A stretch of 64,000 bases of DNA, from the NCBI GenBank assembly GCA_051530055.1, contig CM121341.1, positions 4,690,784 to 4,754,783 on the forward strand, written 5' to 3'. Of this stretch, positions 26,926-52,900 are shown piece after piece; within the stretch, counting starts at the first letter, position 1, and each line of letters opens with the position of its first letter. Position numbers and translations under genes: made by a program. This DNA is from Neoechinorhynchus agilis. Taxonomy: Eukaryota > Animalia > Acanthocephala. A model generated the notes under the pieces. That model saw only the letters and a list, made by a program, of their open reading frames with translations, was not told where the DNA came from and searched no databases.

Positions 26926-27250
26926 TCACGTGTTCACGCGACTTTCCTTTCGTTCTCCATTTTGGTTATTAAACTCGTCAATTTCGGAAACGAATTGAAT
27001 GTCAGAATTATGTTCAAGCGATTTCTCCCCGCTCATCATGAAGAAATTCAAATTTGACGATTTCACTACGATTGCCGTGAGTACTGGCGATTTGTTAAGG
27101 CTGCATTTCAGCGGCACTTCGAGTTTCACTCTCCTCTGATTATACTCCAATCGTTCTCCGGTCAGAGGAGATTTCCGCTGTCGTAATGTTTTGTGGATCG
27201 GTGACTGGAGCACAAGCCGCTTGCTGGCCCTGCAAGTTTATTGAATATCC
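26926..27250 (-). pseudogene. FoxO-like relic C: last coding repeat joined to a deleted C-terminal region
   Basis: 27181-27250 is a coding-type repeat. 27100-27180 matches copy B (KSHLTGERLENNQ). 26990-27100 matches copy A (STHGNLSKIVK...QHNSDIEF). Confidence 0.85.
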
Positions 27251-30200: not shown

Positions 30201-33200
30201 CGCAGAAAGATACGGGCGGTGTCACTTTATTGTTTTTCTGTAACTACAACACAATTTTCTTTCATTGCCGTCAAGTGCATTGAATATCCTTATTGTTCGT
30301 GTGCAACTTCATTGTTTACGTCATGTTCTGAATCAATGCGGCTATTTATTGTCGCAGAAAGATACGGGCGGTGTCACTTTATTGTTTTTCTGTAACTACA
30401 ACACAATTTTCTTTCATTGCCGTCAAGTGCATTGAATATTCTTATTGTTCGTGTGCAACTTCATTGTTTACGTCATGTTCTGAATCAATGCGGCGATTTA
30501 TTGTCGCAGATAGATACGGGCGGTGTCACTTTATTGTTTTTCTGTAACTACAACACAATTTTCTTGCTTTGCCGTCAAGTGCATTGAATATCCTTATTGT
30601 TCGTGTGCAACTTCATTGTTTACGTCATGTTCTGAATCAATGCGGCTATTTATTGTCGCAGAAAGATACGGGCGGTGTCACTTTATTGTTTTTCTGTAAC
30701 TACAACACAATTTTCTTTCATTGCCGTCAAGTGCATTGAATATTCTTATTGTTCGTGTGCAACTTCATTGTTTACGTCATGTTCTGAATCAATGCGGCGA
30801 TTTATTGTCGCAGAAAGATACGAGCGGTGTCACTTTATTGTTTTTCTGTAACTACAACACAATTTTCTTGCTTTGCCGTCAAGTGCATTTAATATTCTTA
30901 TTGTTCGTGTGCAACTTCATTGTTTACGTCATGTTCTGAATCAATGCGGCTATTTATTGTCGCAGAAAGATACGAGCGGTGTCACTTTATTGTTTTTATG
31001 TAACAACAACACAATTTTCTTGCTTTGCCGTCAATTGCATTTAAAATTCTTATTGTTCGTGTGCCACTTCATTGTTTACGTATGTTCTGAATCAATGCGG
31101 CTATTTATTCCCGCAGATAGATACGAGCGGTGTCACTTTATTGTTTTGCGCTAACTAAAACACAATTTTCTTGCTTTGCCGTCAAGTACATTGAATATCC
31201 TTATTGTTCGTGTGCAACTTCATTGTTTACGTCATGTTCTTAATCAATGCGGCTATTTATTCCCGCAGATAGATACGAGCGGTGTCACTTTATTGTTTTG
31301 CGCTAACTAAAACACAATTTTCTTGCTTTGCCGTCAAGTGCATTGAATATCCTTATTGTTCGTGTGCAACTTCATTGTTTACGTCATGTTCTGAATCAAT
31401 GCGGCTATTTATTGTCGCAGAAAGATACGGGCGGTGTCACTTTATTGTTTTTCTGTAACTACAACACAATTTTCTTTCATTGCCGTCAAGTGAATTGAAT
31501 ATTCTTATTGTTCGTGTGCAACTTCATTGTTTGCGTCATGTTCTGAATCAATGCGGCTATTTATTCCCGCAGATAGATACGAGCGGTGTCACTTTATTGT
31601 TTCTCTGTAACTACAACACAATTTTCTTGCTTTGCGGTCAAGTGCATTTAATATTCTTATTGTTTGTGGTCAACTTCATTGTTTACGTCATGTTCTGAAT
31701 CAATGCGGCGATTTATTGTCGCAGATAGATACGGGCGGTGTCACTTTATTGTTTCTCTGTAACTACAACACAATTTTCTTGCTTTGCCGTCAAGTGCATT
31801 GAATATTCTTATTGTTCGTGTGCAACTTCATTGTTTACGTCATGTTCTTAATCAATGCGGCTATTTATTCCCGCAGATAGATACGAGCGGTGTCACTTTA
31901 TTGTTTTTCGCTAACTAAAACACAATTTTCTTGCTTTGCCGTCAAGTGCATTGAATATCCTTATTGTTCGTGCGCAACTTCATTGTTTACGTCATGTTCT
32001 GAATCAATGCGGCTATTTATTGTCGCAGAAAGATACGGGCGGTGTCACTTTATTGTTTTTCTGTAACTACAACACAATTTTCTTTCATTGCCGTCAAGTG
32101 CATTGAATATTCTTATTGTTCGTGTGCAACTTCATTGTTTACGTCATGTTCTGAATCAATGCGGCTATTTATTGCCGCAGATAGATACGAGCGGTGTCAC
32201 TTTATTGTTTTTCGCTAACTACAACACAATTTTCTTGCTTTGCCGTCAAGTGCATTTAATATTCTTATTGTTCGTGTGCAACTTCATTGTTTACGTCATG
32301 TTCTGAATCAATGCGGCGATTTATTGTCGCAGAAAGATACGAGCGGTGTCACTTTATTGTTTCTCTGTAACTACAACACAATTTTCTTTCATTGCCGTCA
32401 AGTGCATTTAATATTCTTATTGTTTGTGGTCAACTTCATTGTTTACGTCATGTTCTGAATCAATGCGGCGATTTATTGTCGCAGAAAGATACGAGCGGTG
32501 TCACTTTATTGTTTTGCTGTAACTACAACACAATTTTTTTCATTGCCGTCAAGTGAATTGAATATTCTTATTGTTCGTGTGCAACTTCATTGTTTACGTC
32601 ATGTTCTGAATCAATGCGGCTATTTATTGTCGCAGATAGATACGAGCGGTGTCACTTTATTGTTTTTCTGTAACTACAACACAATTTTCTTTCATTGCCG
32701 TCAAGTGCATTTAATATTCTTATTGTTCGTGTGCAACTTCATTGTTTACGTCATGTTCTGAATCAATGCGGCGATTTATTGTCGCAGAAAGATACGAGCG
32801 GTGTCACTTTATTGTTTCTCTGTAACTACAACACAATTTTCTTTCATTGCCGTCAAGTGCATTTAATATTCTTATTGTTTGTGGTCAACTTCATTGTTTA
32901 CGTCATGTTCTGAATCAATGCGGCGATTTATTGTCGCAGATAGATACGGGCGGTGTCACTTTATTGTTTTTCTGTAACTACAACACAATTTTCTTTCATT
33001 GCCGTCAAGTGCATTGAATATTCTTATTGTTCGTGTGCAACTTCATTGTTTACGTCATGTTCTGAATCAATGCGGCTATTTATTCCCGCAGATAGATACG
33101 AGCGGTGTCACTTTATTGTTTTTCGCTAACTAAAACACAATTTTCTTGCTTTGCCGTCAAGTGCATTGAATATTCTTATTGTTCGTGTGCAACTTCATTG

Positions 33201-34737
33201 TTTACGTCATGTTCTGAATCAATGCGGCGATTTATTGTCGCAGAAAGATACGGGCGGTGTCACTTTATTGTTTTTCTGTAACTACAACACAATTTTCTTT
33301 CATTGCCGTCAAGTGCATTTAATATTCTTATTGTTCGTGTGCAACTTCATTGTTTACGTCATGTTCTGAATCAATGCGGCTATTTATTCCCGCAGATAGA
33401 TACGAGCGGTGTCACTTTATTGTTTTTCGCTAACTACAACACAATTTTCTTGCTTTGCCGTCAAGTGCATTGAATATTCTTATTGTTCGTGTGCAACTTC
33501 ATTGTTTACGTCATGTTCTGAATCAATGCGGCGATTTATTGTCGCAGAAAGATACGAGCGGTGTCACTTTATTGTTTTTCTGTAACTACAACACAATTTT
33601 CTTTCATTGCCGTAAAGTGCATTGAATATTCTTATTGTTCGTGTGCAACTTCATTGTTTACGTCATGTTCTGAATCAATGCGGCTATTTATTGTCGCAGA
33701 TAGATACGAGCGGTGTCACTTTATTGTTTTTCGCTAACTACAACACAATTTTCTTGCTTTGCCGTCGATTGCATTTAATATTCTTATTGTTCGTGTGCAA
33801 CTTCATTGTTTACGTCATGTTCTGAATCAATGCGGCTATTTATTGTCGCAGAAAGATACGGGCAGTGTCACTTTATTGTTTTTCGCTAACTACAACACAA
33901 TTTTCTTTCATTGCCGTCAAGTGAATTGAATATTTTTATTGTTCGTGTGCAACTTCATTGTTTACGTCATGTTCTGAATCAATGCGGCGATTTATTGTCG
34001 CAGATAGATACGAGCGGTGTCACTTTATTGTTTTTCGCTAACTACAACACAATTTTCTTACTTTGCCGTCAAGTGCATTTAATATTCTTATTGTTCGTGT
34101 GCAACTTCATTGTTTACGTCATGTTCTGAATCAATGCGGCTATTTATTGTCGCAGAAAGATACGGGCGGTGTCACTTTATTGTTTTTCGCTAACTACAAC
34201 ACAATTTTCTATCATTGCCGTCAAGTGCATTTAATATTCTTATTGTTCGTGCGCAACTTCATTGTTTACGTCATGTTCTGAATCAATGCGGCTATTTATT
34301 GTCGCAGATAGATACGAGCGGTGTCACTTTATTGTTTTTCGCTAACTACAACACAATTTTCTATCATTGCCGTCAAGTGCATTGAATATTCTTATTGTTT
34401 GTGGTCTACTTCATTGTTTACGTCATGTTCTGAATCAATGCGGCGATTTATTTTCGCAGATAGATACGAGCGGTGTCACTTTATTGTTTTTCTGTAACTA
34501 CAACACAATTTTCTATCATTGCCGTAAAGTGCATTGAATATTCTTATTGTTCGTGTACAACTTCATTGTTTACGTCATGTTCTGAATCAATGCGGCTATT
34601 TATTGTCGCAGAAAGATACGAGCAGTGTCACTTTATTGTTTTTCTGTAACTAAAACACAATTTTCTTGCTTTGCCGTCAAGTGCATTGAATATTCTTATT
34701 GTTTGTGGTCAACTTCATTGTTTACGTCATGTTCTGA
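27251..34737. repeat. 152-bp satellite, block 1 (about 49 units)
   Basis: Unit TTGCCGTCAAGTGCATTGAATATTCTTATTGTTCGTGTGCAACTTCATTGTTTACGTCATGTTCTGAATCAATGCGGCTATTTATTGTCGCAGATAGATACGAGCGGTGTCACTTTATTGTTTTTCGCTAACTACAACACAATTTTCTTGCT. The period is also visible in ORF-track spacings of 152, 304 and 456 bp. Confidence 0.99.
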
Positions 34738-35109: not shown

Positions 35110-38100
35110 TTAGTCGTCGCTTAATATCTGGTTTAACAAATTATCTTCATCGGAGTCTTCATCGCTGTCAAATTGACTCTCCTCTGGATTTCCGTTTGTA
35201 TTATTAGTCGCGTCATTTTCCTGGTCCTCCTCGGTGTTATCGTTTTTCCTCGGACTGTCAGCGATCCCCAACGCTGCTCGTATCGCGTCCTCTAGTTGAA
35301 GAGTTTCAGCATCCTTTGGTTTTCGTATTACCTCCGCCGGTGGTTCGGATGGTGGTAATTCCTCACGAACGGATTGGGGTGTCATCTCGCCACCTTCAGA
35401 ATAATCTTCTTCTTCGGATTGTTCTCCTTCTGGAGTGCAAGGGCGAAAAAGTATGTTTTCTAGGAACATGTTAACAGTTTGATTAGCATCAACGCTCATA
35501 TAGCTTTCGGCCGGACTGGTAGCCGAAGCGCTTGACGATAGATTAAGTTCCTCTATCGATCGAGGATATTCTAAAATGTACTGCGCGAGCGTTGCCTCGT
35601 CGAACTGAGATGATCCGTTAAATTGATCCTTTGTTTCAACTCCAACTGGAATGGGTATATGTTGCTCAGATTCAAATTGTTCATTGATCTTGTGATATTG
35701 TTGGTGGTGTTCAGTTTGGGGCTCCTGCTGGTTTATCGGTCCAAAGTTAACATCGGGAGAAAAATTGAAGTTATCACGATCGTTGTCTGGCGCTTCAAAT
35801 GAAAAATAGTGCTCGTGTTCGACGTTTGGCCGACGATATCTATCTAAATCTTCATTGGCAATCTCATATCTATCAGCCGACAATGTATTAAATATAGTCC
35901 CCCTTTGCTCATCGTGTAGATTTACGGTGTCATCCAGCTGCAGTTCAGCGGCACTTCGAGTTTCATTCTCTGCTCTAATCTGATTATTTTCTAATCGTTC
36001 TCCGGTCAGATGAGATTTCTGCTCGTTTAGCAACCGGAAATTTTCTTGGTAATCCTCATCATTAAGCCCAACTTTATCCGAAAAATTACGCTGGTTGCTT
36101 TCGTGTGCCCCCTTGATTTCAGCTTCAATATTTGGTTCAGGACACATCTTTTGCTTTTTAGGTGGATGACATTCCGAAACGTCGTGTGTCCTTTTAGTGC
36201 TTTGTTTATCGGAAAAAATTTGGTGGCTCCGTATTGATTTTTGTTCACACATCTGCTCATTCGACTTCGCCGTTTCATCAGTTACCTTATTCGAGGACAG
36301 ATCTGCTCCTTGATAGTTTTGTACGCCCGTCATATTTTCTCTTTGCGTACAATTAATTTTTTGCATTTTGCTTAATTCCTTATAATTATCGGTGCCTTCA
36401 TATTGCCTTTTCATTGCTGTTATTGAATTTTGATTGAATCGTTTTTGGCCACTCGCCGATCGATCATCGCCATCCTTATTGATCATTGAAGCACAGTTCA
36501 TTGAATATCCTTGCTGTTCGCGTGGAACTTCATTCTTAACCTCAGTGTTCTGATTTGGCGCCGCTATTTCGTGTTGTTGATAAAAATGCGCCGTCGTAAT
36601 GTTTTGTGGATCGGTGACTGGAGCATAAGCCGCTTGCTGGCCTTGCAAGTGCATTGAATATCCTTGCTGCTCGCGTTGATCTTCATTGTTAACCTCAGTG
36701 TTCAGATTTTGCGCCGCTATTTCGGTTTGTTGATAGAAACCTACCGTCGCCATGTTTTGTGGTTCGCTGATTGGAGCACAAGCCGCTTGCTGGCCCTGCA
36801 AGTTTATTGAATATCCTTGCTGTTCGCGTGGATCTTCATTGTTTACCCCAGTGTTCGGATTTGGCGCCGTTATTTCGGTTTGTTGATAGAAACCCGCTGC
36901 CGTCATGTTTTGTGGATTGGTTACTGGAGCACGAGCCGCTTGCTGATCCTGCAAGTACATTGAATATCCTTGTTGTTCGCGTTGAACTTCATTGTTTACC
37001 CAAGTGTTCGGATTTGGAGCCGCTATTTCGGTTTCTTGATAGAAACCCACCGTCGCCATGTTTTGTGGTTCGGTGATTGGAGCGCAAGCCGCTTGCTGAT
37101 CCTGCAAGTGCATTGAATATCCTTGCTGTTCGCGTGGATCTTCATTGTTAACCTCAGTGTTCGGATGAGGTGCCGCAATTTCGTATTGTTGGTGGAAACC
37201 CACCGTCGCCATGTTTTGTAGTTCGGTGATTGGAGCACAAGCCGCTTGCTGATCCTGCAAGTGCATTGAATATCCTTGTTGTTCGCGTGGATCTTCATTG
37301 TTAACCTCAGTGTTCGGATTTGGCGCCGTTATTTCGGTTTGTTGATAGAAACCCGCTGCCGTCATGTTTTGTGGATTGGTTACTGGAGCACAAGCCGCTT
37401 GCTGATCCTGCAAGTGCATTGAATATCCTTGCTGTTCGCGTGGAACTTCATTGTTTACCCCAGTGTTCGGATTTGGCGCCGCTATTTCGGTTTGTTGATA
37501 GAAACCCACCGTCGCCATGTTTTGTGGTTCGCTGATTGGAGCACAAGCCGCTTGCTGATCCTGCAAGTGCATTGAATATCCTTGTTGTTCGCGTTGATCT
37601 TCATTGTTAACCTCAGTGTTCTGATTTGGCGCCGCTATTTCGTGTTGTTGATAGAAACCCACCGTCGCCATGTTTTGTGGTTCAGTGATTGGAGCACAAG
37701 CCGCTTGCTCATCCTGCAAGTGCATTGAATATCCTTGTTGTTCGCGTTGATCTTCATTGTTAACCTCAGTGTTCTGATTTGGCGCCGCTATTTCGTGTTG
37801 TTGATAGAAACCCACCGTCGCCATGTTTTGTGGTTCAGTGATTGGAGCACAAGCCGCTTGCTCATCCTGCAAGTGCATTGAATATCCTTGTTGTTCGCGT
37901 TGATCTTCATTGTTAACCTCAGTGTTCTGATTTGGCGCCGCTATTTCGTGTTGTTGATAGAAACCCACCGTCGCCATGTTTTGTGGTTCAGTGATTGGAG
38001 CACAAGCCGCTTGCTCATCCTGCAAGTGCATTGAATATCCTTGTTGTTCGCGTTGATCTTCATTGTTAACCTCAGTGTTCTGATTTGGCGCCGCTATTTC

Positions 38101-41100
38101 GTGTTGTTGATAGAAACCCACCGTCGCCATGTTTTGTGGTTCAGTGATTGGAGCACAAGCCGCTTGCTCATCCTGCAAGTGCATTGAATATCCTTGTTGT
38201 TCGCGTTGATCTTCATTGTTTACCTCAGTGTTCTGATTTGGCGCCGCTATTTCGTGTTGTTGATAGAAACCCACCGTCGCCATGTTTTGTGGTTCAGTGA
38301 TTGGAGCACAAGCCGCTTGCTGATCCTGCAAGTGCATTGAATATCCTTGTTGTTCGCGTTGAACTTCATTGTTTACCCCAGTGTTCGGATTTTGCGCCGC
38401 TATTTCGTTTTGTTGATAGAAGCCCACCGTCGCCATGTTTTTTGGTTCGGTAATTGGAGCACAAGCCGCTTGCTGATCCTGCAAGTGCATTGAATATCCT
38501 TGCTGTTCGCGATGATCTTCATTGTTAACCTCAATGTTCTGATTTGGCGCCGCTGTTTCGTTTTGTTGATAAAAACGTGCTGTTGCCATGTTTTGGTGTT
38601 CGGTGATTCGAGCACATACCGCTTGTTCGGCCGGTAAGTTTATTGAATATCCTCGCTGTTCGCGTGGAACTTCATTGTTTACCTCAGTATTCTGATTGGG
38701 TGCCACTATTTGGCGTTTTTGATAGAAACTCGCCGCCGTCGTGGTTTGTTGATCGGTGAATTGAGCACAAACCGCTTGTTGGGCTTGCAAATGCATCGAA
38801 TATCCTTGCTGTTCGCGTGGAACTTCATTGTTTACCCCAATGTTCTGATTGGGTTCCGCTATTTTGTGTTGTTGATAGAAACCCGCTGCCGTCATGTTTT
38901 GTGGATTGGTTACTGGAGCATAAGCCGCTTGCTGGCCCCGCGAGTTCATTGAATATCCTTCTTGTTCGCTTGGAACTCTATTGTTTACGTCAGTGTTCCG
39001 ATGTGGCCCCGCTATTTGGTGTTGTTGATGGATACCCGCTGTCGCCATGCTTTGTTGATCGGTGGCTGGAGCGCAAGGCATTTGTTTGGTTTGCAAGTGC
39101 ATTGAATATCCTTGTTGTTCGCGTTGAACTCTATTGTTTGCGTCAGCGTTCTGATTAGGTGCCACTACTTGGTTTTGTTGATAGAAACCCGCTGCTGCCA
39201 TGTTTTGTTGATCGGATGCTGGAGTGCAAGGCATTTGTTGGCCCTGCAAGTTCATTGAATATCCTTGTTGTTCGCGTTGAACTCTACTGTTTACGTCCGG
39301 GTTCGAATTGGGTGCCATTACTTGGTATTGTTGATAGAAACCCGCTGCCGCCATGGTTTGTTGATCGGTTAATGGAGCACAAGTCGCTTGCTGGCCCTGC
39401 AAGTTCATTGAATATCCTTGTTGTTCGCGTGGAACTCTATTGTTTACGTCAGCGTTCTGATTAGGTGCCGCTATTTGGTGTTGTTGATGGAAACCCGCTG
39501 CCGCCATGTTTTGTTGATCGTTGAATGGAGCACAAACTCCTTGCTGGCCCTGCAAGTTCATTGAATATCCTTGTTGTTCACGTGAAACTCTATTGTTTAC
39601 GTCAGCGTTCTGATTAGGTGCCGCTATTTGGTGTTGTTGATGGAAACCCGCTGCCGCCATGTTTTGTTGATCGTTGAATGGAGCACAAACTCCTTGCTGG
39701 CCCTGCAAGTTCATTGAATATCCTTGTTGTTCACGTGAAACTCTATTGTTTACGTCAGCGTTCTGATTAGGTGCCGCTATTTGGTGTTGTTGATGGAAAC
39801 CCGCTGCCGCCATGTTTTGTTGATCGTTGAATGGAGCACAAACTCCTTGCTGGCCCTGCAAGTTCATTGAATATCCTTGTTGTTCACGTGAAACTCTATT
39901 GTTTACGTCAGCGTTCTGATTAGGTGCCGCTATTTGGTGTTGTTGATGGAAACCCGCTGCCGCCATGTTTTGTTGATCGTTGAATGGAGCACAAACTCCT
40001 TGCTGGCCCTGCAAGTTCATTGAATATCCTTGTTGTTCACGTGAAACTCTATTGTTTACGTCAGCGTTCTGATTAGGTGCCGCTATTTGGTGTTGAGGAT
40101 AGTAACCCGCGGTTACCATGTTTTGTTGATCGGTGAATGGAGCACAAACTCCTTGCTGGCCCTGCAAGTTCATTGAATATCCTTGTTTTTCGCGTTGAAC
40201 TCTATTGTTTACGTCCGGGTTCTGATTGGGTGCCGCTATTTGGTGTTGTTGATTGAAACCCGCTGCCGCCATGTTTTGTTGATCGGTGAATGGAGCACAA
40301 GCCGCTTGCTGGCCCTGCAAGTGCATTGAATATCCTTGTTTTTCGCGTAGAGCTCTATTGTTTACGTCAGCGCTCTGATTATGTGCCACTACTTGGTGTT
40401 GTTGATGGAAACCCGCTGCCGCCATGCTTTGTTGATCGGTGAATGGAGCACAAGCCGCTTGCTGGCCCTGCAAGTGCATTGAATATCCTTGTTGTTCGCG
40501 TGCAACTCTATTGTTTACGTCAGCGTTCTGATTAGGTGCCACTACTTGGTTTTGTTGGTAGAAACCCGCTGCTGCCATGTTTTGTTGATCGGTGAATGGA
40601 GCACAAACCGCTTGTTGGCCTTGCAAGTGCATTGTAAATCCTTGTTGTTCGCGTGAAACTGTATTGTTTACGTCAGCGTTCTGGTTAGGTGCCGCTATTT
40701 GGTGTTGAGGATTGTAACTCGCGGTTGCCATGTTTTGTTGATCGGTGAATGGAGCACAAGCCGCTTGCTGGCCCTGCAAGGGCATTGAATATCCTTGTTG
40801 TTCGCGTGAAAATCTATTGTTTACGTCGGCGTTCTGATTAGGTGCCACTATTTGGTGTTGAGGATAGTAGCCCGCGGTTGCCATGTTTTGTCGATCGGTA
40901 CCACTAATCATTCGAACAGGATTTGCCATCAATGTAGGATGTATGTTTTGGCCACTATTTCCCAAATTTAATCGTTCTGTTGGCGGTTGTTGTTCTTGCT
41001 GCCATTGTTGCTGATATTGAGCAGGCTGTTGTTGGTTGTTCATCTGAGTTCCGTAGTTATGCACTCCCGATGGGTCTTGGGCATTTTGCAATGTTCCAAT

Positions 41101-41721
41101 ATTTTGGAGAGCTGGGTTATGGTAAATGTTTTGCGGATTGCCGTTTCCTTTAATAAAATTCTGAGCTGTCATCATGGGATTTGGCTGTTGCATTTGCTGC
41201 GTGCCGTAAAAGTGACCCGTATTGCCGGCCAATTGTTGGATATTTTGGTTTTGGAAGGCATTTGCATTGGTTATCGGACCCAAATTTTGTTGGAAATGTC
41301 CAAGCACATTCGGGTTGTAGAAATTTCCTTGAGCATACGGTGCCATCACAGCGGCTCCATTTCCACCCGCTGCAACATCATTTGGTACGGCACCATCGTA
41401 GGTAAGATTTTTAGCTTGAAATTCGTCCCTGTTCCTTAAACGACCATCCTTGTTGCCTCCATTGATGGCCCAGTGCATTCCATTTGGGCCCTGGGATACT
41501 CTTACCAGTGTAAACTTGTTGCTCGCAGATAATTTATGACGAACATAGTTTTGCCAATTTTTTACTCCCTCTTCGTCAGTTATTGCGGCAAAATATGGAT
41601 AATTCTGTTTAAAATAATCGTAGATCTTTTGTAGTGGCAGTGTGCGATTAGGAGCGTTGCTGATCGCCAACCTGGCTATTTCGGAAATGCTTATATCTCC
41701 CCACGCATTTTGTCTCGGCAT
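35110..41721 (-). CDS. FOXO-like: Divergent FoxO-type forkhead protein, copy B, intact 2203 aa, about 29 Q/N-rich repeats, acidic C-terminus
   Basis: Single uninterrupted ORF. N-terminal forkhead domain RQNAWGDISISEIARLAI...WQNYVRHKLS...HW. Confidence 0.92.
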   Translation of the reverse strand: MPRQNAWGDISISEIARLAISNAPNRTLPLQKIYDYFKQNYPYFAAITDEEGVKNWQNYVRHKLSASNKFTLVRVSQGPNGMHWAINGGNKDGRLRNRDEFQAKNLTYDGAVPNDVAAGGNGAAVMAPYAQGNFYNPNVLGHFQQNLGPITNANAFQNQNIQQLAGNTGHFYGTQQMQQPNPMMTAQNFIKGNGNPQNIYHNPALQNIGTLQNAQDPSGVHNYGTQMNNQQQPAQYQQQWQQEQQPPTERLNLGNSGQNIHPTLMANPVRMISGTDRQNMATAGYYPQHQIVAPNQNADVNNRFSREQQGYSMPLQGQQAACAPFTDQQNMATASYNPQHQIAAPNQNADVNNTVSREQQGFTMHLQGQQAVCAPFTDQQNMAAAGFYQQNQVVAPNQNADVNNRVAREQQGYSMHLQGQQAACAPFTDQQSMAAAGFHQQHQVVAHNQSADVNNRALREKQGYSMHLQGQQAACAPFTDQQNMAAAGFNQQHQIAAPNQNPDVNNRVQREKQGYSMNLQGQQGVCAPFTDQQNMVTAGYYPQHQIAAPNQNADVNNRVSREQQGYSMNLQGQQGVCAPFNDQQNMAAAGFHQQHQIAAPNQNADVNNRVSREQQGYSMNLQGQQGVCAPFNDQQNMAAAGFHQQHQIAAPNQNADVNNRVSREQQGYSMNLQGQQGVCAPFNDQQNMAAAGFHQQHQIAAPNQNADVNNRVSREQQGYSMNLQGQQGVCAPFNDQQNMAAAGFHQQHQIAAPNQNADVNNRVPREQQGYSMNLQGQQATCAPLTDQQTMAAAGFYQQYQVMAPNSNPDVNSRVQREQQGYSMNLQGQQMPCTPASDQQNMAAAGFYQQNQVVAPNQNADANNRVQREQQGYSMHLQTKQMPCAPATDQQSMATAGIHQQHQIAGPHRNTDVNNRVPSEQEGYSMNSRGQQAAYAPVTNPQNMTAAGFYQQHKIAEPNQNIGVNNEVPREQQGYSMHLQAQQAVCAQFTDQQTTTAASFYQKRQIVAPNQNTEVNNEVPREQRGYSINLPAEQAVCARITEHQNMATARFYQQNETAAPNQNIEVNNEDHREQQGYSMHLQDQQAACAPITEPKNMATVGFYQQNEIAAQNPNTGVNNEVQREQQGYSMHLQDQQAACAPITEPQNMATVGFYQQHEIAAPNQNTEVNNEDQREQQGYSMHLQDEQAACAPITEPQNMATVGFYQQHEIAAPNQNTEVNNEDQREQQGYSMHLQDEQAACAPITEPQNMATVGFYQQHEIAAPNQNTEVNNEDQREQQGYSMHLQDEQAACAPITEPQNMATVGFYQQHEIAAPNQNTEVNNEDQREQQGYSMHLQDEQAACAPITEPQNMATVGFYQQHEIAAPNQNTEVNNEDQREQQGYSMHLQDQQAACAPISEPQNMATVGFYQQTEIAAPNPNTGVNNEVPREQQGYSMHLQDQQAACAPVTNPQNMTAAGFYQQTEITAPNPNTEVNNEDPREQQGYSMHLQDQQAACAPITELQNMATVGFHQQYEIAAPHPNTEVNNEDPREQQGYSMHLQDQQAACAPITEPQNMATVGFYQETEIAAPNPNTWVNNEVQREQQGYSMYLQDQQAARAPVTNPQNMTAAGFYQQTEITAPNPNTGVNNEDPREQQGYSINLQGQQAACAPISEPQNMATVGFYQQTEIAAQNLNTEVNNEDQREQQGYSMHLQGQQAAYAPVTDPQNITTAHFYQQHEIAAPNQNTEVKNEVPREQQGYSMNCASMINKDGDDRSASGQKRFNQNSITAMKRQYEGTDNYKELSKMQKINCTQRENMTGVQNYQGADLSSNKVTDETAKSNEQMCEQKSIRSHQIFSDKQSTKRTHDVSECHPPKKQKMCPEPNIEAEIKGAHESNQRNFSDKVGLNDEDYQENFRLLNEQKSHLTGERLENNQIRAENETRSAAELQLDDTVNLHDEQRGTIFNTLSADRYEIANEDLDRYRRPNVEHEHYFSFEAPDNDRDNFNFSPDVNFGPINQQEPQTEHHQQYHKINEQFESEQHIPIPVGVETKDQFNGSSQFDEATLAQYILEYPRSIEELNLSSSASATSPAESYMSVDANQTVNMFLENILFRPCTPEGEQSEEEDYSEGGEMTPQSVREELPPSEPPAEVIRKPKDAETLQLEDAIRAALGIADSPRKNDNTEEDQENDATNNTNGNPEESQFDSDEDSDEDNLLNQILSDD
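36490..40880 (-). repeat. Coding tandem repeat (153-bp unit) in copy B
   Basis: Same unit family as in copy A, with runs of near-identical units at about 37550-38250 and 39450-40050. Confidence 0.97.
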
Positions 41722-41930
41722 ATTGTTTTCAAGAATTTGGAGCTTATAATGGTTTGAAAGAGATAAAAGAAGATTTCAACCGTTTGTGAGAGTTTCTAAA
41801 GGATTAAAATACGCTCATCTTTGGTCGTTTTGACTAATGTATTCAGGTGATGTAGCAAACAGTTTTTGGATAAACTATTTACCATTCAAACTCCATATTT
41901 GTCAATAACTCTGCGCTTTCAGCCCCAATA
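41722..41930 (-). promoter_or_regulatory. Conserved upstream block of copy B
   Basis: Homologous to 19572-19790. CAGGTG 41844-41849, GCAAACA 41855-41861, TATTTAC 41876-41882. Confidence 0.5.
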
Positions 41931-42024
41931 GTACACTAAGTTTTGTCGTTGTTTTCAAAACGCCAATAAAATTCAAAACATAAACCGATTTTAGATATTA
42001 CTATCGAGTCGCTGTATTGTATTA

Positions 42025-43957
42025 TTACACTCAATAAGCCATCATCACGTATTTTGGAATTCGGATCATAAGGTCCAGAATATTGGATTGAGGATTGTTG
42101 TGCAGAGTTTTCCTATCTATAGTTTATGTCGTCTTTTATTTAAATTTACAATTATGCATCTTAGTCTCTATACTTAAAGTAAACATACTTTCTCGATTGT
42201 TTCTTTAATTTGCGTTTCAATCACTAAAATTAAGAAGAGTCTAGGTTAGAATTGTTTTTAGAAAGTAGATCACATTCAAAAGATTTGGTATGGTTAATTT
42301 GAGTAATAAGAAAAATATAGATGCATTGGATGGGGACGGATCCGTAAACCAGTTAAACACGAATATTCTAATATAGAATTCGGTATTTGGCGTTCATATT
42401 CGGTGTACTGATCCACAAGGCGACTCGGAAATAAATCGGTGACTTATCGCTAATGAGTTGTAATGATGCCTAAACAACGACAAGAATGGAATTACTTTGC
42501 TAATAGCAAAAACTTTCAAACACACAATAAATTTGATTCCACAAATGTTATTAATAAATCGTTTTATTTCAGGGAACATCAGGTATCTATTGAAACTTGT
42601 AAGTTTTGGGTGTTCCATCTTTGCAGCTACAAAACGTTAGCTGTTGATTGTCGTTTTCCGCTCTCTAGCTTTTGTATTAGTTGAGTTGGCTTTGGTCGGT
42701 TAATTTATAGTTGTTTTCCGCTCTTTCCTCTGAATCATTTCGCATTTGGCCGATTAAGCGCTGGAGACGAAGGTAGAGATTTTTGCGAGGAATTGAAGGA
42801 TGGAAAGTGTTGGGACGATGAGTGTTATAAGTGTAAGTAAAAGGATAAATGTGTGGTAGAAATTGAAGAGGCGGAAGAGAATGAAGGTGTTTTGAGTGCT
42901 TTTGAGATTTGAGAGAGGTGTTCTTCTACGAGTTTGGGGGAGCAGATTAGAGTGAACCTCCATTGTGAAATGTATTAAGTATTTTGGAAAAAGGTTAGAA
43001 GGAAAATTGCAGAAGGTTAGAAGAGCGTAGGTGAGCGTTGGTAGGATCACACGGACATATAAAAGTACTTAAGGTCTTTGGATGATAATCCGAGGAGTCG
43101 GAGGCGTTTAAGAAGATAGAGCTTAATGGATCCCTTGTGCAACAAAATTGATATGTGCTTCTTCTATAGATTTTTCTGAAAATAAAGACCAAGTATACGA
43201 ACAGAGGAGACACGATTGATAGGAAAAGGAAAAAGTGGCTGATCGGAAGGACTATTTGAGATTCAGGGGACGATTTCAAAGCACTTCGTTAAGTTAAGGG
43301 TAAAACATTTAGGGGAGCAAAATTCTTGAACGTGAGAAATCTCGTTAGGAGTAATTGAGAGTGAGACGGAGGATACCGGTACATCCGTAATGATTATAAG
43401 ATCACCCGCATACAAGACGTATTTAGAATAAAAAGAGAATGAAATAAGATCGGTTAGGAAAATGTTGAAAGGAATGGGGAAGAGAACAGTCCGTTCGAGA
43501 ACTCCTTTGTTGATTGCTAAGGTATTCGAGACGATGCTGCCTATTTTGGTAAATTGTAATCGATTGTTTAGAAAGGAATTAAACCATTTGATTTGCCAGG
43601 CGACAAAAATAAATTTAGAGCATGTATCAAGGAGAAGATTTTGATCAACGGAATCAAAAGCTTTATGAATGTCAATTTGGATGAGTCGAGAGATAAATAA
43701 AGGTTTTGCGTCGAGATAATGAAGAACGCGTCGGTACAGAAGCCGGGCCGGTAACCGAATTGAATGGATGAAATTTTTCGATTGAAGATTGGCAGAAGGT
43801 GTGCTTTAAAGCATCTCTCTAAGATTTTAGAGAAGGAATCTAAGTTAGAGATGGGTCGAAAACTTGAGGTGGATATAAGTTCACCTGCTTTCGGGAGCAG
43901 AGTTACCCGATCTCTTTTTGGGCAATTATGGAAGATTCCGGTCTTGAAACTTTGGTT
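42025..43957. repeat. Segmental duplication, copy 2, including a truncated copy of the LINE (about 42670-43957)
   Basis: Matches 20031-21986 and breaks off at ACTTTGGTT, where the satellite resumes. Confidence 0.95.
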
Positions 43958-46900
43958 TCTGAATCAATACGGCTATTCGATGACGCAGATAGATACGAGC
44001 GGTGTCACTTTATTGTTTTTCGCGGACTACAACACAATTTTCTTGCTTTGCCGTCAAGTGCATTTAATATTCTTATTGTTCGTGTGCAACTTCATTGTTT
44101 ACGTCATGTTCTGAATCAATGCGGCTATTTATTGTCGCAGATAGATACGAGCGGTGTCACTTTATTGTTTTTCTGCGACTACAACACAATTTTCTATCAT
44201 TGCCGTCGAGTGCATTTAATATTCTTATTGTTCGTGTGCAACTTCATTGTTTACGTCATGTTCTGAATCAATGCGGCGATTTATTGTCGCAGAAAGATAC
44301 GAGCGGTGTCACTTTATTGTTTTTCTGTAACTACAACACAATTTTCTTGCTTTGCCGTCAAGTGCATTTAATATTCTTATTGTTCGTGTGCAACTTCATT
44401 GTTTACGTCATGTTCTGAATCAATGCGGCGATTTATTGTCGCAGAAAGATACGAGCGGTGTCACTTTATTGTTTTTCGCGGACTACAACACAATTTTCTT
44501 GCTTTGCCGTCAAGTGCATTGAATATTCTTATTGTTCGTGTGCAACTTCATTGTTTACGTCATGTTCTGAATCAATGCGGCTATTTATTGTCGCAGATAG
44601 ATACGAGCGGTGTCACTTTATTGTTTTTCGCTAACTACAACACAATTTTCTTGCTTTGCCGTCAAGTGCATTTAATATTCTTATTGTTCGTGTGCAACTT
44701 CATTGTTTACGTCATGTTCTGAATCAATGCGGCGATTTATTGTCGCAGAAAGATACGAGCGGTGTCACTTTATTGTTTTTCGCTGACTACAACACAATTT
44801 TCTTGCTTTGCCGTCAAGTGCATTTAATATTCTTATTGTTCGTGTGCAACTTCATTGTTTACGTCATGTTCTGAATCAATGCGGCTATTTATTGTCGCAG
44901 ATAGATACGAGCGGTGTCACTTTATTGTTTTTCTCTAACTACAACACAATTTTCTTTCATTGCCGTCGAGTGCATTTAATATTCTTATTGTTCGTGTGCA
45001 ACTTCATTGTTTACGTCATGTTCTGAATCAATGCGGCGATTTATTGTCGCAGAAAGATACGAGCGGTGTCACTTTATTGTTTTTCGCTAACTACAACACA
45101 ATTTTCTTGCTTTGCCGTCAAGTGCATTGAATATTCTTATTGTTCGTGTGCAACTTCATTGTTTACGTCACGTTCTGAATCAATGCGGCGATTTATTGTC
45201 GCAGATAGATACGAGCGGTGTCACTTTATTGTTTTTCGCGGACTACAACACAATTTTCTTGCTTTGCCGTCAAGTGCATTTAATATTCTTATTGTTCGTG
45301 TGCAACTTCATTGTTTACGTCATGTTCTGAATCAATGCGGCTATTTATTGTCGCAGATAGATACGAGCGGTGTCACTTTATTGTTTTTCTGTAACTACAA
45401 CACAATTTTCTATCATTGCCGTCGAGTGCATTTAATATTCTTATTGTTCGTGTGCAACTTCATTGTTTACGTCATGTTCTGAATCAATGCGGCGATTTAT
45501 TGTCGCAGATAGATACGAGCGGTGTCACTTTATTGTTTTTCGCGGTCTACAACACAATTTTCTTGCTTTGCCGTCAAGTGCATTGAATATTCTTATTGTT
45601 CGTGTGCAACTTCATTGTTTACGTCATGTTCTGAATCAATGCGGCGATTTATTGTCGCAGAAAGATACGAGCGGTGTCACTTTATTGTTTTTCGCTGACT
45701 ACAACACAATTTTCTTGCTTTGCCGTCGAGTGCATTTAATATTCTTATTGTTCGTGTGCAACTTCATTGTTTACGTCATGTTCTGAATCAATGCGGCGAT
45801 TTATTGTCGCAGAAAGATACGAGCGGTGTCACTTTATTGTTTCTCTGTAACTACAACACAATTTTCTTGCTTTGCCGTAAGTGCATTGAATATTCTTATT
45901 GTTCGTGTGCAACTTCATTGTTTACGTCATGTTCTGAATCAATGCGGCTATTTATTGTCGCAGAAAGATACGAGCGGTGTCACTTTATTGTTTCTTTGTA
46001 ACTACAACACAATTTTCTTGCTTTGCCGTCAATTGCATTTAAAATTCTTATTGTTCGTGTGCCACTTCATTGTTTACGTCATGTTCTGAATCAATGCGGC
46101 TTGTTATTGTCGCAGAAAGATACGAGCGGTGTCACTTTATTGTTTTCTGTAACTACAACACAATTTTCTATCATTGCCGTAAAGTGCATTGAATATTCTT
46201 ATTGTTCGTGTGCAACTTCATTGTTTACGTCATGTTCTGAATCAATGCGGCGATTTATTGTCGCAGATAGATACGAGCGGTGTCACTTTATTGTTTTTCG
46301 CTAACTACAACACAATTTTCTTGCTTTGCCGTCAAGTGCATTGAATATTCTTATTGTTCGTGTGCAACTTCATTGTTTACGTCATGTTCTGAATCAATGC
46401 GGCGATTTATTGTCGCAGATAGATACGAGCGGTGTCACTTTATTGTTTTTCGCGGACTACAACACAATTTTCTTGCTTTGCCGTAAAGTGCATTTAATAT
46501 TCTTATTGTTCGTGCTCAACTTCATTGTTTACGTCATGTTCTGAATCAATGCGGCTATTTATTGTCGCAGATAGATACGAGCGGTGTCACTTTATTGTTT
46601 TTCGCTAACTACAACACAATTTTCTTGCTTTGCCGTCAAGTGCATTGAATATTCTTATTGTTCGTGTGCAACTTCATTGTTTACGTCATGTTCTGAATCA
46701 ATGCGGCTATTTATTCCCGCAGATAGATACGAGCGGTGTCACTTTATTGTTTTTCGCTAACTACAACACAATTTTCTTGCTTTGCCGTCGAGTGCATTTA
46801 ATATTCTTATTGTTCGTGTGCAACTTCATTGTTTACGTCATGTTCTGAATCAATGCGGCTATTTATTGTCGCAGAAAGATACGAGCGGTGTCACTTTATT

Positions 46901-49900
46901 GTTTTTCTGTAACTACAACACAATTTTCTATCATTGCCGTAAAGTGCATTGAATATTCTTATTGTTCGTGTGCAACTTCATTGTTTACGTCACGTTCTGA
47001 ATCAATGCGGCGATTTATTGTCGCAGATAGATACGAGCGGTGTCACTTTATTGTTTTTCGCGGACTACAATACAATTTTCTTGCTTTGCCGTCATGTGCA
47101 TTGAATATTCTTATTGTTCGTGTGCAACTTCATTGTTTACGTCATGTTCTGAATCAATGCGGCGATTTATTGTCGCAGATAGATACGAGCGGTGTCACTT
47201 TATTGTTTTTCGCTAACTACAACACAATTTTCTTGCTTTGCCGTCAAGTGCATTGAATATTCTTATTGTTCTTGTGCAACTTCATTGTTTACGTCATGTT
47301 CTGAATCAATGCGGCGATTTATTGTCGCAGAAAGATACGAGCGGTGTCACTTTATTGTTTTTCGCGGACTACAACACAATTTTCTTGCTTTGCCGTCAAG
47401 TGCATTTAATATTCTTATTGTTCGTGTGCAACTTCATTGTTTACGTCATGTTCTGAATCAATGCGGCTATTTATTGTCGCAGATAGATACGAGCGGTGTC
47501 ACTTTATTGTTTTTCGCTAACTACAACACAATTTTCTTGCTTTGCCGTCAAGTGCATTTAATATTCTTATTGTTCGTGTGCAACTTCATTGTTTACGTCA
47601 TGTTCTGAATCAATGCGGCTATTTATTGTCGCAGAAAGATACGAGCGGTGTCACTTTATTGTTTTTCTGTAACTACAACACAATTTTCTATCATTGCCGT
47701 CAAGTGCATTGAATATTCTTATTGTTCGTGTGCAACTTCATTGTTTACGTCATGTTCTGAATCAATGCGGCTATTTATTGTCGCAGATAGATACGAGCGG
47801 TGTCACTTTATTGTTTTTCGCTAACTACAACACAATTTTCTTGCTTTGCCGTCAATTGCATTTAATATTCTTATTGTTCGTGTGCAACTTCATTGTTTAC
47901 GTCATGTTCTGAATCAATGCGGCGATTTATTGTCGCAGATAGATACGAGCGGTGTCACTTTATTGTTTTTCGCGGACTACAACACAATTTTCTTGCTTTG
48001 CCGTCAAGTGCATTGAATATTCTTATTGTTCGTGTGCAACTTCATTGTTTACGTCATGTTCTGAATCAATGCGGCATTTATTGTCGCAGAGATACGAGCG
48101 GTGTCACTTTATTGTTTTTCGCGACACCAATTTTCTTGCTTTGCCGTCAAGTGCATTAATATTCTAATTGTTCGTGTGCAACTATTGTTTACGTCACGTT
48201 CTGAATCAATGCGGCGATTTATTGTCGCAGATAGATACGAGCGGTGTCACTTTATTGTTTTTCGCGGACTACAATACAATTTTCTTGCTTTGCCGTCAAG
48301 TGCATTTAATATTCTTATTGTTCGTGCTCAACTTCATTGTTTACGTCATGTTCTGAATCAATGCGGCTATTTATTGTCGCAGATAGATACGAGCGGTGTC
48401 ACTTTATTGTTTTTCTGTAACTACAACACAATTTTCTATCATTGCCGTAAAGTGCATTGAATATTCTTATTGTTCGTGTGCAACTTCATTGTTTACGTCA
48501 TGTTCTGAATCAATGCGGCTATTTATTCCCGCAGATAGATACGAGCGGTGTCACTTTATTGTTTTTCGCTAACTACAACACAATTTTCTTGCTTTGCCGT
48601 CAAGTGCATTTAATATTCTTATTGTTCGTGTGCAACTTCATTGTTTACGTCATGTTCTGAATCAATGCGGCTATTTATTGTCGCAGAAAGATACGAGCGG
48701 TGTCACTTTATTGTTTTTCTGTAACTACAACACAATTTTCTTTCATTGCCGTCAAGTGCATTGAATATTCTTATTGTTCGTGTGCAACTTCATTGTTTAC
48801 GTCATGTTCTGAATCAATGCGGCGATTTATTGTCGCAGATAGATACGAGCGGTGTCACTTTATTGTTTTTCGCTAACTACAACACAATTTTCTTGCTTTG
48901 CCGTCAAGTGCATTTAATATTCTTATTGTTCGTGTGCAACTTCATTGTTTACGTCATGTTCTGAATCAATGCGGCTATTTATTGTCGCAGAAAGATACGA
49001 GCGGTGTCACTTTATTGTTTTTCTGTAACTACAACACAATTTTCTTTCATTGCCGTCAAGTGCATTGAATATTCTTATTGTTCGTGTGCAACTTCATTGT
49101 TTACGTCATGTTCTGAATCAATGCGGCTATTTATTGTCGCAGAAAGATACGAGCGGTGTCACTTTATTGTTTTTCTGTAACTACAACACAATTTTCTTTC
49201 ATTGCCGTCAAGTGCATTGAATATTCTTATTGTTCGTGTGCAACTTCATTGTTTACGTCATGTTCTGAATCAATGCGGCGATTTATTGTCGCAGATAGAT
49301 ACGAGCGGTGTCACTTTATTGTTTTTCGCGGACTACAACACAATTTTCTTGCTTTGCCGTCAAGTGCATTGAATATTCTTATTGTTCGTGTGCAACTTCA
49401 TTGTTTACGTCATGTTCTGAATCAATGCGGCGATTTATTGTCGCAGATAGATACGAGCGGTGTCACTTTATTGTTTTTCGCTAACTACAACACAATTTTC
49501 TTGCTTTGCCGTCAAGTGCATTGAATATTCTTATTGTTCGTGTGCAACTTCATTGTTTACGTCATGTTCTGAATCAATGCTTTATTGTTATATGTCACTT
49601 TATTTTTTCGCTGACTACAACACAATTTTCTTGCTTTGCCGTCAAGTGCATTGAATATTCTTATTGTTCGTGTGCAACTTCATTGTTTACGTCATGTTCT
49701 GAATCAATGCGGCTATTTATTGTCGCAGATAGATACGAGCGGTGTCACTTTATTGTTTTTCGCTAACTACAACACAATTTTCTTGCTTTGCCGTCAATTG
49801 CATTTAATATTCTTATTGTTCGTGTGCAACTTCATTGTTTACGTCATGTTCTGAATCAATGCGGCGATTTATTGTCGCAGATAGATACGAGCGGTGTCAC

Positions 49901-52900
49901 TTTATTGTTTTTCGCGGACTACAACACAATTTTCTATCATTGCCGTCAAGTGCATTGAATATTCTTATTGTTCGTGTGCAACTTCATTGTTTACGTCATG
50001 TTCTGAATCAATGCGGCTATTTATTGTCGCAGATAGATACGAGCGGTGTCACTTTATTGTTTTTCGCTAACTACAACACAATTTTCTTGCTTTGCCGTCA
50101 AGTGCATTTAATATTCTTATTGTTCGTGTGCAACTTCATTGTTTACGTCATGTTCTGAATCAATGCGGCGATTTATTGTCGCAGATAGATACGAGCGGTG
50201 TCACTTTATTGTTTTTCGCTGACTACAACACAATTTTCTTGCTTTGCCGTCAAGTGCATTTAATATTCTTATTGTTCGTGTGCAACTTCATTGTTTACGT
50301 CATGTTCTGAATCAATGCGGCGATTTATTGTCGCAGATAGATACGAGCGGTGTCACTTTATTGTTTTTCGCGGACTACAACACAATTTTCTTGCTTTGCC
50401 GTCAAGTGCATTTAATATTCTTATTGTTCGTGTGCAACTTCATTGTTTACGTCATGTTCTGAATCAATGCGGCTATTTATTGTCGCAGATAGATACGAGC
50501 GGTGTCACTTTTGTTTTTCGCTAACTACAACACAATTTTCTTGCTTTGCCGTCAAGTGCATTTAATATTCTTATTGTTCGTGTGCAACTTCATTGTTTAC
50601 GTCATGTTCTGAATCAATGCGGCTATTTATTGTCGCAGAAAGATACGAGCGGTGTCACTTTATTGTTTTTCTGTAACTACAACACAATTTTCTTGCTTTG
50701 CCGTCAAGTGCATTGAATATTCTTATTGTTCGTGTGCAACTTCATTGTTTACGTCATGTTCTGAATCAATGCGGCTATTTATTGTCGCAGATAGATACGA
50801 GCGGTGTCACTTTATTGTTTTTCGCTAACTACAACACAATTTTCTTGCTTTGCCGTCAAGTGCATTTAATATTCTTATTGTTCGTGTGCAACTTCATTGT
50901 TTACGTCATGTTCTGAATCAATGCGGCTATTTATTGTCGCAGAAAGATACGAGCGGTGTCACTTTATTGTTTTTCTGTAACTACAACACAATTTTCTATC
51001 ATTGCCGTAAAGTGCATTGAATATTCTTATTGTTCGTGTGCAACTTCATTGTTTACGTCATGTTCTGAATCAATGCGGCGATTTATTGTCGCAGATAGAT
51101 ACGAGCGGTGTCACTTTATTGTTTTTCGCGGACTACAATACAATTTTCTTGCTTTGCCGTCGAGTGCATTTAATATTCTTATTGTTCGTGTGCAACTTCA
51201 TTGTTTACGTCATGTTCTGAATCAATGCGGCGATTTATTGTCGCAGATAGATACGAGCGGTGTCACTTTATTGTTTTTCGCGGACTACAATACAATTTTC
51301 TTGCTTTGCCGTCAAGTGCATTGAATATTCTTATTGTTCGTGTGCAACTTCATTGTTTACGTCATGTTCTGAATCAATGCGGCGATTTATTGTCGCAGAA
51401 AGATACGAGCGGTGTCACTTTATTGTTTTTCGCGGACTACAACACAATTTTCTTGCTTTGCCGTCAAGTGCATTTAATATTCTTATTGTTCGTGTGCAAC
51501 TTCATTGTTTACGTCATGTTCTGAATCAATGCGGCGATTTATTGTCGCAGAAAGATACGAGCGGTGTCACTTTATTGGTTTTCTGTAACTACAACACAAT
51601 TTTCTATCATTGCCGTAAAGTGCATTGAATATTCTTATTGTTCGTGTGCAACTTCATTGTTTACGTCACGTTCTGAATCAATGCGGCTATTTATTGTCGC
51701 AGATAGATACGGGCGGTGTCACTTTATTGTTTTTCGCGGACTACAATACAATTTTCTTGCTTTGCCGTCATGTGCATTGAATATTCTTATTGTTCGTGTG
51801 CAACTTCATTGTTTACGTCATGTTCTGAATCAATGCGGCGATTTATTGTCGCAGATAGATACGAGCGGTGTCACTTTATTGTTTTTCGCTAACTACAACA
51901 CAATTTTCTTGCTTTGCCGTCAAGTGCATTGAATATTCTTATTGTTCTTGTGCAACTTCATTGTTTACGTCATGTTCTGAATCAATGCGGCGATTTATTG
52001 TCGCAGAAAGATACGAGCGGTGTCACTTTATTGTTTTTCGCGGACTACAACACAATTTTCTTGCTTTGCCGTCAAATGCATTGAATATTCTTATTGTTCG
52101 TGTGCAACTTCATTGTTTACGTCATGTTCTGAATCAATGCGGCTATTTATTGTCGCAGATAGATACGAGCGGTGTCACTTTATTGTTTTTCGCTAACTAC
52201 AACACAATTTTCTTGCTTTGCCGTCAAGTGCATTTAATATTCTTATTGTTCGTGTGCAACTTCATTGTTTACGTCATGTTCTGAATCAATGCGGCGATTT
52301 ATTGTCGCAGATAGATACGAGCGGTGTCACTTTTGTTTTTCTGTAACTACAACACAATTTTCTTGCTTTGCCGTCAATTGCATTTAAAATTCTTATTGTT
52401 CGTGTGCCACTTCATTGTTTACGTCATGTTCTGAATCAATGCGGCTTGTTATTGTCGCAGAAAGATACGAGCGGTGTCACTTTATTGTTTTTCTGTAACT
52501 ACAACACAATTTTCTATCATTGCCGTAAAGTGCATTGAATATTCTTATTGTTCGTGTGCAACTTCATTGTTTACGTCATGTTCTGAATCAATGCGGCGAT
52601 TTATTGTCGCAGATAGATACGAGCGGTGTCACTTTATTGTTTTTCGCTAACTACAACACAATTTTCTTGCTTTGCCGTCGATTGCATTTAATATTCTTAT
52701 TGTTCGTGTGCAACTTCATTGTTTACGTCATGTTCTGAATCAATGCGGCGATTTATTGTCGCAGATAGATACGAGCGGTGTCACTTTATTGTTTTTCGCT
52801 AACTACAACACAATTTTCTTGCTTTGTGGTCAAGTGCATTTAATATTCTAATTGTTCGTGTGCAACTTCATTGTTTACGTCACGTTCTGAATCAATGCGG

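Follow-up and report, generated by a model that had tools for sequence, protein, structure and literature searches.

The stretch of DNA analysed here (64,000 nucleotides, positions 4,690,784 to 4,754,783 of the forward strand of chromosome CM121341.1; called here the window) comes from the acanthocephalan fish parasite Neoechinorhynchus agilis (assembly GCA_051530055.1; the chromosome measures 19.4 Mb). It carries two paralogous forkhead genes, called here A and B, whose products differ far more in the forkhead domain, and above all in its recognition helix and wings, than in the low-complexity linker that follows. This contrast is probably best explained by concerted evolution through gene conversion, and diversifying selection on the domain is not shown by the substitution data. 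A and B would be members of a lineage-specific, FoxO-derived forkhead family of N. agilis that evolves in concert, and the surplus of differences that A and B show in their forkhead domains would mainly reflect the coalescence age of one DNA segment rather than a faster evolution of the domain protein.

Paralog B is a single uninterrupted open reading frame (ORF) of 2203 aa on the minus strand (35110..41721), whose codons 1-98 (41428..41721, minus strand) encode the forkhead domain, recognised with phmmer, AlphaFold2 and Foldseek. Paralog A lies on the same strand, starts at 19571 and ends at 11974; its forkhead domain, more FoxO-like than that of B, occupies codons 1-98 (19278..19571). Both genes have the same layout, with a forkhead domain from residue 1, a Q/N-rich low-complexity linker of about 230 residues, about 29 to 31 tandem 51-aa repeats (153-bp unit) and a non-repetitive tail that ends with an acidic motif. 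In B, the tandem array of 28.8 copies (about 29 repeats) spans 36495..40899 on the minus strand and is followed by a 463-aa tail. This array holds runs of identical 51-aa units, which points to ongoing unequal exchange. The A tail is unrelated to the B tail apart from the last 38 or so amino acids. As assembled, the A gene body (11974..19571, minus strand) is split into four ORFs in frames 0, 1, 0 and 2, with breaks near 18600, at 17324-17453 and at 14184-14298. The first of these is a stop (18597-18599) located after codon 324 and arising from a degenerate second repeat; no convincing splice sites were found when it was checked as a short intron. The frame breaks may correspond to a pseudogenising lesion, to unusual splicing or to an assembly error in the repeat array.

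The protein contrast that formed the basis of the original prediction was reproduced by ungapped comparison. A and B differ at 20 of the first 98 residues (positions 4, 17, 18, 21, 31, 52, 55, 57, 59, 63, 66, 68, 71, 72, 80, 86, 88, 89, 90 and 97), 15 of these differences being in residues 52-97, and at 13 of the 178 residues from 99 to 276, a number first given as approximate. Six of the differences (52, 55, 57, 59, 63 and 66) fall within helix 3 (residues 50-66 in the B model), and most of the remaining domain differences are located in strands S2 and S3 and in both wings. The helix-3 strings are, as claimed, WKNSVRHTLS for A and WQNYVRHKLS for B, and the canonical WKNSIRHNLS is present in the aligned FOXO1/3/4 chains. 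The amino-acid differences are unevenly distributed between domain and linker (Fisher test, p=0.0019) and between the second and first halves of the domain (p=0.011). Likewise, a maximum chi-square analysis of the nucleotide alignment placed a change-point at codon ~119, with 12.8% divergence on one side and 2.8% on the other, and none of 2000 permutations was as extreme (p<0.0005). These tests indicate that the A-B contrast is more than chance.

A contrast between domain and linker proteins is not readable as selection until silent and flanking sites have been checked. The nonsynonymous (dN) and synonymous (dS) divergences between A and B were calculated by the Nei-Gojobori method. In the forkhead box (codons 1-98), dS reaches 0.27 and dN 0.098 (dN/dS 0.37), whereas in the linker (codons 99-276) dS is 0.06 and dN 0.032 (dN/dS 0.52). 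Thus dS is 4 to 5 times higher in the box than in the linker, and the difference in synonymous changes is significant (Fisher p=0.0028); nucleotide divergence is 11.9% in the box and 3.6% in the linker. The non-coding DNA behaves in the same manner. The 209 bp directly upstream of the ATG (19572..19780 in A, minus strand) show 14.4% A-B divergence, whereas only 7 of 1934 aligned bases (0.36%), plus one 23-bp indel, differ in a 1.9-kb block located further upstream (A 20030..21990 and B 42020..43957, both minus strand, about 99.6% identical). The gene-conversion test that had been proposed for this locus therefore revealed shifts of divergence at silent and non-coding sites alike (dS 0.27 against 0.06; 14.4% against 0.36%). 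Since silent and non-coding sites mirror the amino-acid contrast, the domain is not evolving faster relative to its own silent sites; rather, the whole segment is older.

Regarding the upstream block, we considered that it might be a transposon inserted twice, which was rejected as a full explanation: its proximal 420-660 bp are also found upstream of the third paralog described below, contiguous with the gene, and only its distal end overlaps a LINE-like (long interspersed nuclear element) reverse-transcriptase fragment. This fragment (21597-22118, minus strand) spans the distal edge of the block common to A and B. The B copy of the block ends at 43957, where it is cut off by a satellite. It should also be noted that about 250 bp common to A and the third paralog, lying between the proximal flank and the upstream block (A 19782-20030), are missing from B, which contains in their place about 90 bp of unrelated sequence (41930-42018).

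A third paralog, C, was found via two annotated N. agilis proteins in the 90% cluster of the A product. KAL7667561.1 (1507 aa) is encoded on the unplaced 30-kb contig JBMGUZ010000032.1 (locus L002), and KAL7676019.1 (198 aa) at 9.7 Mb on CM121341.1, the chromosome of A and B (locus L003). The two loci are identical across the 5' flank, the forkhead box and the linker up to codon ~165, and were counted as one paralog. The unplaced contig contains the complete C gene plus satellite; the gene is annotated as near full-length (1507 aa), and its 4562-nt gene model implies a short annotated intron. The chromosomal copy (copy D) continues into unrelated sequence after codon ~165, from position 10590 of L003 (~9.72 Mb), without Ns, and this break probably reflects either a mis-join or a truncated haplotype. 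The family comparison thus covers three copies (A, B and C) of one assembly, with no outgroup species. A homologous-protein search with B residues 1-329 returned only the products of the window itself and no intermediate paralog that might have served as donor, and neither a further gene copy at the right end of the window (60.6-64 kb) nor extra forkhead remnants were found. The published N. agilis transcriptome/genome paper does not mention forkhead, FoxO or satellites (PMC12690905).

All three pairs of copies display the same mosaic. Divergence is 14-17% in the proximal 5' flank (14-15% between B, 41722..41930 on the minus strand, and A or C), 9.5-12% in the forkhead box and 1.9-2.8% in the distal linker (codons 142-323 of B, 40753..41298 on the minus strand, 2-3% from A and C), and about 2% in the upstream region from -875 to -460. 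In every pair, a divergent island of about 625 bp (approximately -205 to +420) is thus embedded between homogenised flanks. Moreover, the closest relatives change from one segment to the next. Between -48 and +91 (41631..41769 in B, minus strand), almost all variable sites are unique to A and B is identical to C, notably in codons 1-30; between +99 and +151, four sites are unique to C; and between +155 and +423 (codons 52-141; 41299..41567 in B, minus strand), 24 sites are unique to B, 8 to A and 5 to C, so that B stands apart from A and C, which are close to each other. A runs test on the uniquely differing copy at each site rejected a random order (p=5e-5). Outside the island, only 8 of 1764 bases of tail plus 3' flank (0.45%) distinguish B from C, with 3 differences among the 463 residues of the tail protein, and the distal upstream block groups A with B, C being 96-97% identical over its proximal ~420 bp. 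Adjacent segments therefore support the groupings (B,C) in -48..+91 and in the tail, (A,C) in +155..+423 and (A,B) in the distal upstream block. As these groupings conflict and no single tree fits them, the family is reticulate. Local hypermutation of the island, which could have occurred, would not explain the switches of nearest relative inside it.

To these three sequences we applied segment-level estimates of dN/dS. The pairwise dN/dS of the whole domain, which the third paralog allowed us to obtain for each pair, is 0.30-0.37 and significantly lower than 1 (binomial test of omega<1, P=0.004-0.018). Residues 1-51 give 0.14-0.19 and residues 52-98, comprising helix 3 plus the wings, 0.36-0.79. 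On the B branch, dN/dS is 0.41 for codons 52-141 (P=0.02) and ranges from 0.41 to 0.48, whereas the A and C branches show 5 nonsynonymous and 1 synonymous changes and 6 and 2 changes, respectively, in residues 52-98, i.e. ratios of about 0.8-1.3 on 6-8 changes that are compatible with neutrality. No dN/dS above 1 was found in the domain or in helix 3 plus wings, either pairwise or on the B branch, and no value obtained by domain shows diversifying selection. Of the two interpretations offered by the original prediction, gene conversion homogenising the linker thus gained support from the silent-site contrast and from the conflicting trees, and diversifying selection on specificity lost ground with ratios below 1. 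A helix-3 dN/dS lower than 1 together with a linker kept similar by conversion, which had been named as the outcome speaking against selection, is largely what we observed. A few sites of B (S59Y, R72L and K80N) could still be adaptive, or selection could help to keep the island unconverted.

Taken together, these data are consistent with the following scenario. Through ectopic gene conversion or unequal recombination among the copies, the linker and the arrays, as well as the distal upstream region and parts of the tails, would recently have been homogenised; the 4.5-kb arrays of 153-bp repeats and the common upstream block are the probable seeds of this exchange. The segment of about 625 bp from -205 to +420, which includes the proximal promoter and 5' untranslated region, the forkhead box and about 40 further codons, would have escaped most of this conversion and would keep an older divergence of 10-17%. 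Even so, the data support that conversion reached both sides of the forkhead box and into the box itself. Conversion tracts appear to end near codon 51, with B identical to C and distinct from A in the first half of the domain, and A close to C and distinct from B in the second half. This boundary, combined with a C-terminal half of the domain that is less tightly constrained, would concentrate the A-B differences in helix 3 and in the wings.

Several points weigh against this scenario. The borders of the island are alike in all three pairs, with similar DNA on both sides, which random neutral patches of conversion do not obviously predict. Selection against the conversion of a DNA-binding domain or promoter that has diverged in function, or a structural block, may be needed as well; the heterology of B (an indel at -210..-460) lies just where the island begins on its 5' side and could stop conversion tracts there. 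The common borders thus leave room for selection or a structural block protecting the forkhead-plus-promoter cassette. In addition, dN in residues 52-98 is 0.10-0.16 and approaches the non-coding divergence, and this part of the domain may be near-neutral or may have experienced a mixture of positive and purifying selection. The three copies, compared without an outgroup, do not resolve the donors and directions of conversion. Finally, regions rich in near-identical paralogs are prone to errors of assembly or polishing, which could produce the mosaic or make it look sharper; the reading frame of copy A is broken, and copy D stops abruptly.

In phmmer searches of PDB chains, which matched 42-46 forkhead chains, paralog A aligned best with FOXO4/FOXO3 (E-value 5e-16) and paralog B with FOXO3/4/1 (7e-14), with bit scores to FoxO chains of 61.8 and 55.4, respectively, and a match to Pfam PF00250 (forkhead) is on record for the A product. 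The AlphaFold2 model of B residues 1-110 (predicted local distance difference test, pLDDT, 81.6; predicted template modelling score, pTM, 0.76) shows the expected order H1-S1-H2-H3-S2-wing1-S3-wing2, with predicted elements H1 at residues 12-21, S1 at 27-29, H2 at 30-40, H3 at 50-66, S2 at 70-74, S3 at 82-86 and a wing-2 helix at 97-104. Foldseek superimposed this model on FOXO1-DNA complexes with template modelling scores of 0.85-0.90 and a root-mean-square deviation of 1.7-2.1 A. The top PDB and Foldseek matches are FOXO1/3/4 and Brugia DAF-16a. The alignment with FoxO is ungapped over residues 3-87, whereas alignments with FoxA/K/P are 3-8 residues shorter. The N. agilis family keeps the N-terminal RxNAWG motif and an H2-H3 segment of FoxO length. 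The closest non-self proteins, obtained by an exhaustive search of 1.84 billion cluster representatives, are only 31-44% identical. In all copies, near-invariant FoxO residues are replaced (Y12I, S82M and W83H). Wing 2 reads RLR(K/N)RDE(V/F)Q, devoid of Ser and Thr, whereas the relatives have RRRA(A/V)S. No AKT/PKB site (RxRxxS/T) is present before the domain or in wing 2, the protein starting 2 residues before NAWG. The family is thus a forkhead domain of FoxO descent and not a canonical FoxO. Two much more divergent FoxO-like genes, KAL7676058.1 and KAL7676061.1 (called here P0037 and P0153), are located on the same 19.4-Mb chromosome and differ from each other in helix 3, including a W to L change at a conserved Trp. 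Their divergence points to a wider family of aberrant FoxO-like genes in N. agilis.

The strongest alternative, which we regard as possible but doubtful, is neofunctionalisation guarded against conversion, in which selection purges the conversion events that erase differences in binding or in promoter function among A, B and C. It should be noted that this alternative adds selection to the conversion model and does not replace conversion. The shared limits of the island (about -205 to +420) in all pairs, flanked by similar DNA, are in agreement with it, and so are the residues that changed. We compared the states of A, B and C with 127 FoxO-like relatives from the exhaustive search. Position 59, Ser in 100% of the relatives, is Tyr in B alone. 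It corresponds to FOXO1 Ser212, an MST1 phosphosite in the recognition helix (PMC8106445), adjacent to the base-contacting Asn211 (PMC8034652); the original prediction had placed this Ser-to-Tyr change at the DNA interface. At position 72, R or K in 100% of the relatives, C has R, A has H and B has L; the corresponding FOXO1 residue, Arg225, contacts a DNA phosphate (PMC8034652). At position 80, 95% of the relatives have K, as does A; B has N there and C has R. Changes of B at near-invariant columns (S59Y, R72L and K80N, next to R72H in A and K80R in C) also include N63-type to K and L66-type to A, and it is known that forkhead specificity can be modulated through the wings and the H2-H3 region (PMC8501956). 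S59Y, R72L and K80N are radical replacements at backbone-contact sites that hardly vary in FoxO, so that the affinity or flank preference of B could differ. On the other hand, the pairwise dN/dS values and that of the B branch (0.41) do not exceed 1, divergence in the non-coding part of the island equals or surpasses that of the coding part, and N55, K63 and I86 of B, which are unique to this copy among the three, match the distant paralog P0153 or the FoxO consensus and may be ancestral rather than new. Furthermore, the residues N58, R61, H62 and S65, equivalent to Asn211, Arg214, His215 and Ser218 that make the base contacts of FOXO1 (PMC8034652), are identical in A, B and C; as these base-reading residues are unchanged, the core binding motif is likely kept in all copies.

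It is unlikely that the pattern results from relaxed constraint or incipient decay, in which one or more copies of a redundant family would be losing DNA binding; the backbone contacts lost in B and the broken frame of A would then mark stages of pseudogene formation. Consistent with decay, the reading of A is spread over four frames and meets a stop after codon 324, changes on the A and C branches in residues 52-98 are close to neutral, B scores lower than A against FoxO chains (55 versus 62 bits) and copy D is truncated after codon ~165. However, the B ORF extends over 6.6 kb without a stop, C is annotated as near full-length, the first half of the domain has a dN/dS of only 0.14-0.19 with the whole domain significantly below 1, and B is confidently predicted to fold as a forkhead. 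Very unlikely, finally, is a history of staggered partial duplications in which the 3' parts, the linker and the distal upstream region were copied recently onto older forkhead cassettes: it predicts the same mosaic of divergence levels, and transposable-element fragments and satellites at the block edges could mediate rearrangement, but it would take several independent and precise replacements, each at the orthologous position, across three loci of which two lie about 5 Mb apart, and the tracts of 140-270 bp inside the forkhead box are typical of conversion tract lengths and not of segmental duplication. We infer that conversion rather than such duplications made the mosaic and that the arrays seed the exchange.

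The forkhead genes are bordered by a 152-bp satellite, of which 49 units are present 3' of gene B (27233..34737) and 109 units abut the upstream block of B (43957..60569). The same satellite is also found after paralog C, over at least 9.6 kb (L002 14936-24562, at least 63 units). It is about 74% identical to, and in the same orientation as, the coding 153-bp repeat (51 aa) of the forkhead genes, and the non-coding satellite and the coding minisatellite therefore have a common origin. Nearly every satellite unit and most coding repeat units contain TTGTTTAC, a perfect FoxO/DAF-16 element, which on the sense strand reads GTAAACAA, the V-N-N codons of the 51-aa repeat, and is the canonical FoxO/DAF-16 element. 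The window contains 200 matches to TTGTTTAC where 4.8 are expected (for example 27273-27280, 40817-40824 and 44095-44102). In the three satellite arrays, it is present in 48 of 49, 107 of 109 and 62 of 63 units (217 of 221 together), whereas the median consensus 8-mer of the satellite is kept in 77-89% of units, and it lies within the best-conserved block of the unit, of about 35 bp. The enrichment was noticed post hoc. Because the satellite units are copies, the recurrence of the element amounts to a single ancestral coincidence, with a chance of about 1% per unit, and because the satellite is homologous to the coding repeat the element may simply derive from the V-N-N codons.

It is a speculative and improbable idea that the forkhead paralogs bind the flanking satellite and that selection keeps the island apart as the copies track satellite variants or chromatin targets. 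If true, the case would amount to co-evolution between a transcription factor and a satellite, with a coding minisatellite and a non-coding satellite of common ancestry. Fast-evolving DNA-binding proteins that track satellite DNA are known, for example Drosophila OdsH. By analogy, the N. agilis domain differs among young paralogs and the adjoining satellites carry the consensus site of the domain family; unlike in OdsH-type systems, dN/dS does not exceed 1 and the satellite is homologous to the coding repeat of the gene itself.

The window contains further ORFs. Two adjacent ORFs of 522 and 311 aa (49-2846, plus strand) contain protease, reverse-transcriptase, RNase H and integrase-like motifs and, from these motifs, appear to be the pol region of a long terminal repeat retrotransposon. 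An intron-free ORF at 7474-8736 (plus strand) encodes a lysine-rich 420-aa protein. Two further intron-free ORFs encode a putative GNAT acetyltransferase (23954-24502, plus strand, 182 aa) and a putative mitochondrial ribosomal protein S18 (5101-5520, minus strand, 139 aa), both recognised by eye.

Concerted evolution with unconverted islands of divergence has been described in models of the Innan and Teshima type and in the primate opsin and RH genes. The N. agilis family would be analogous to these cases, its paralogs being near-identical over most of their length, silent and non-coding sites included, with a short older segment and adjacent trees that conflict. It differs from the classical islands in that the island takes in a transcription factor's DNA-binding domain together with the proximal promoter, in that a long coding minisatellite makes up most of the homogenised part, and in that selection on the island is not demonstrated. 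With respect to FoxO and DAF-16, the family keeps RxNAWG, the ungapped FoxO-length H2-H3 segment and the N-x-x-R-H-x-x-S base contacts. Unlike FoxO and DAF-16, its domain begins at residue 1, without the N-terminal AKT/14-3-3 site or the wing-2 RRRAAS, and its proteins carry about 30 copies of a 51-aa repeat for which no Pfam match is on record.

The analysis also brings to light a FoxO-derived family, so far uncharacterised, from a parasite phylum whose genes have very little functional annotation; this family does not have the AKT switch that defines FoxO regulation. Its copies offer natural variants at the FoxO backbone-contact positions (equivalents of Ser212, Arg225 and Lys233) that are directly testable for effects on binding. 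The common ancestry of the coding repeat and of a large satellite carrying FoxO sites is the more unusual feature of the family.

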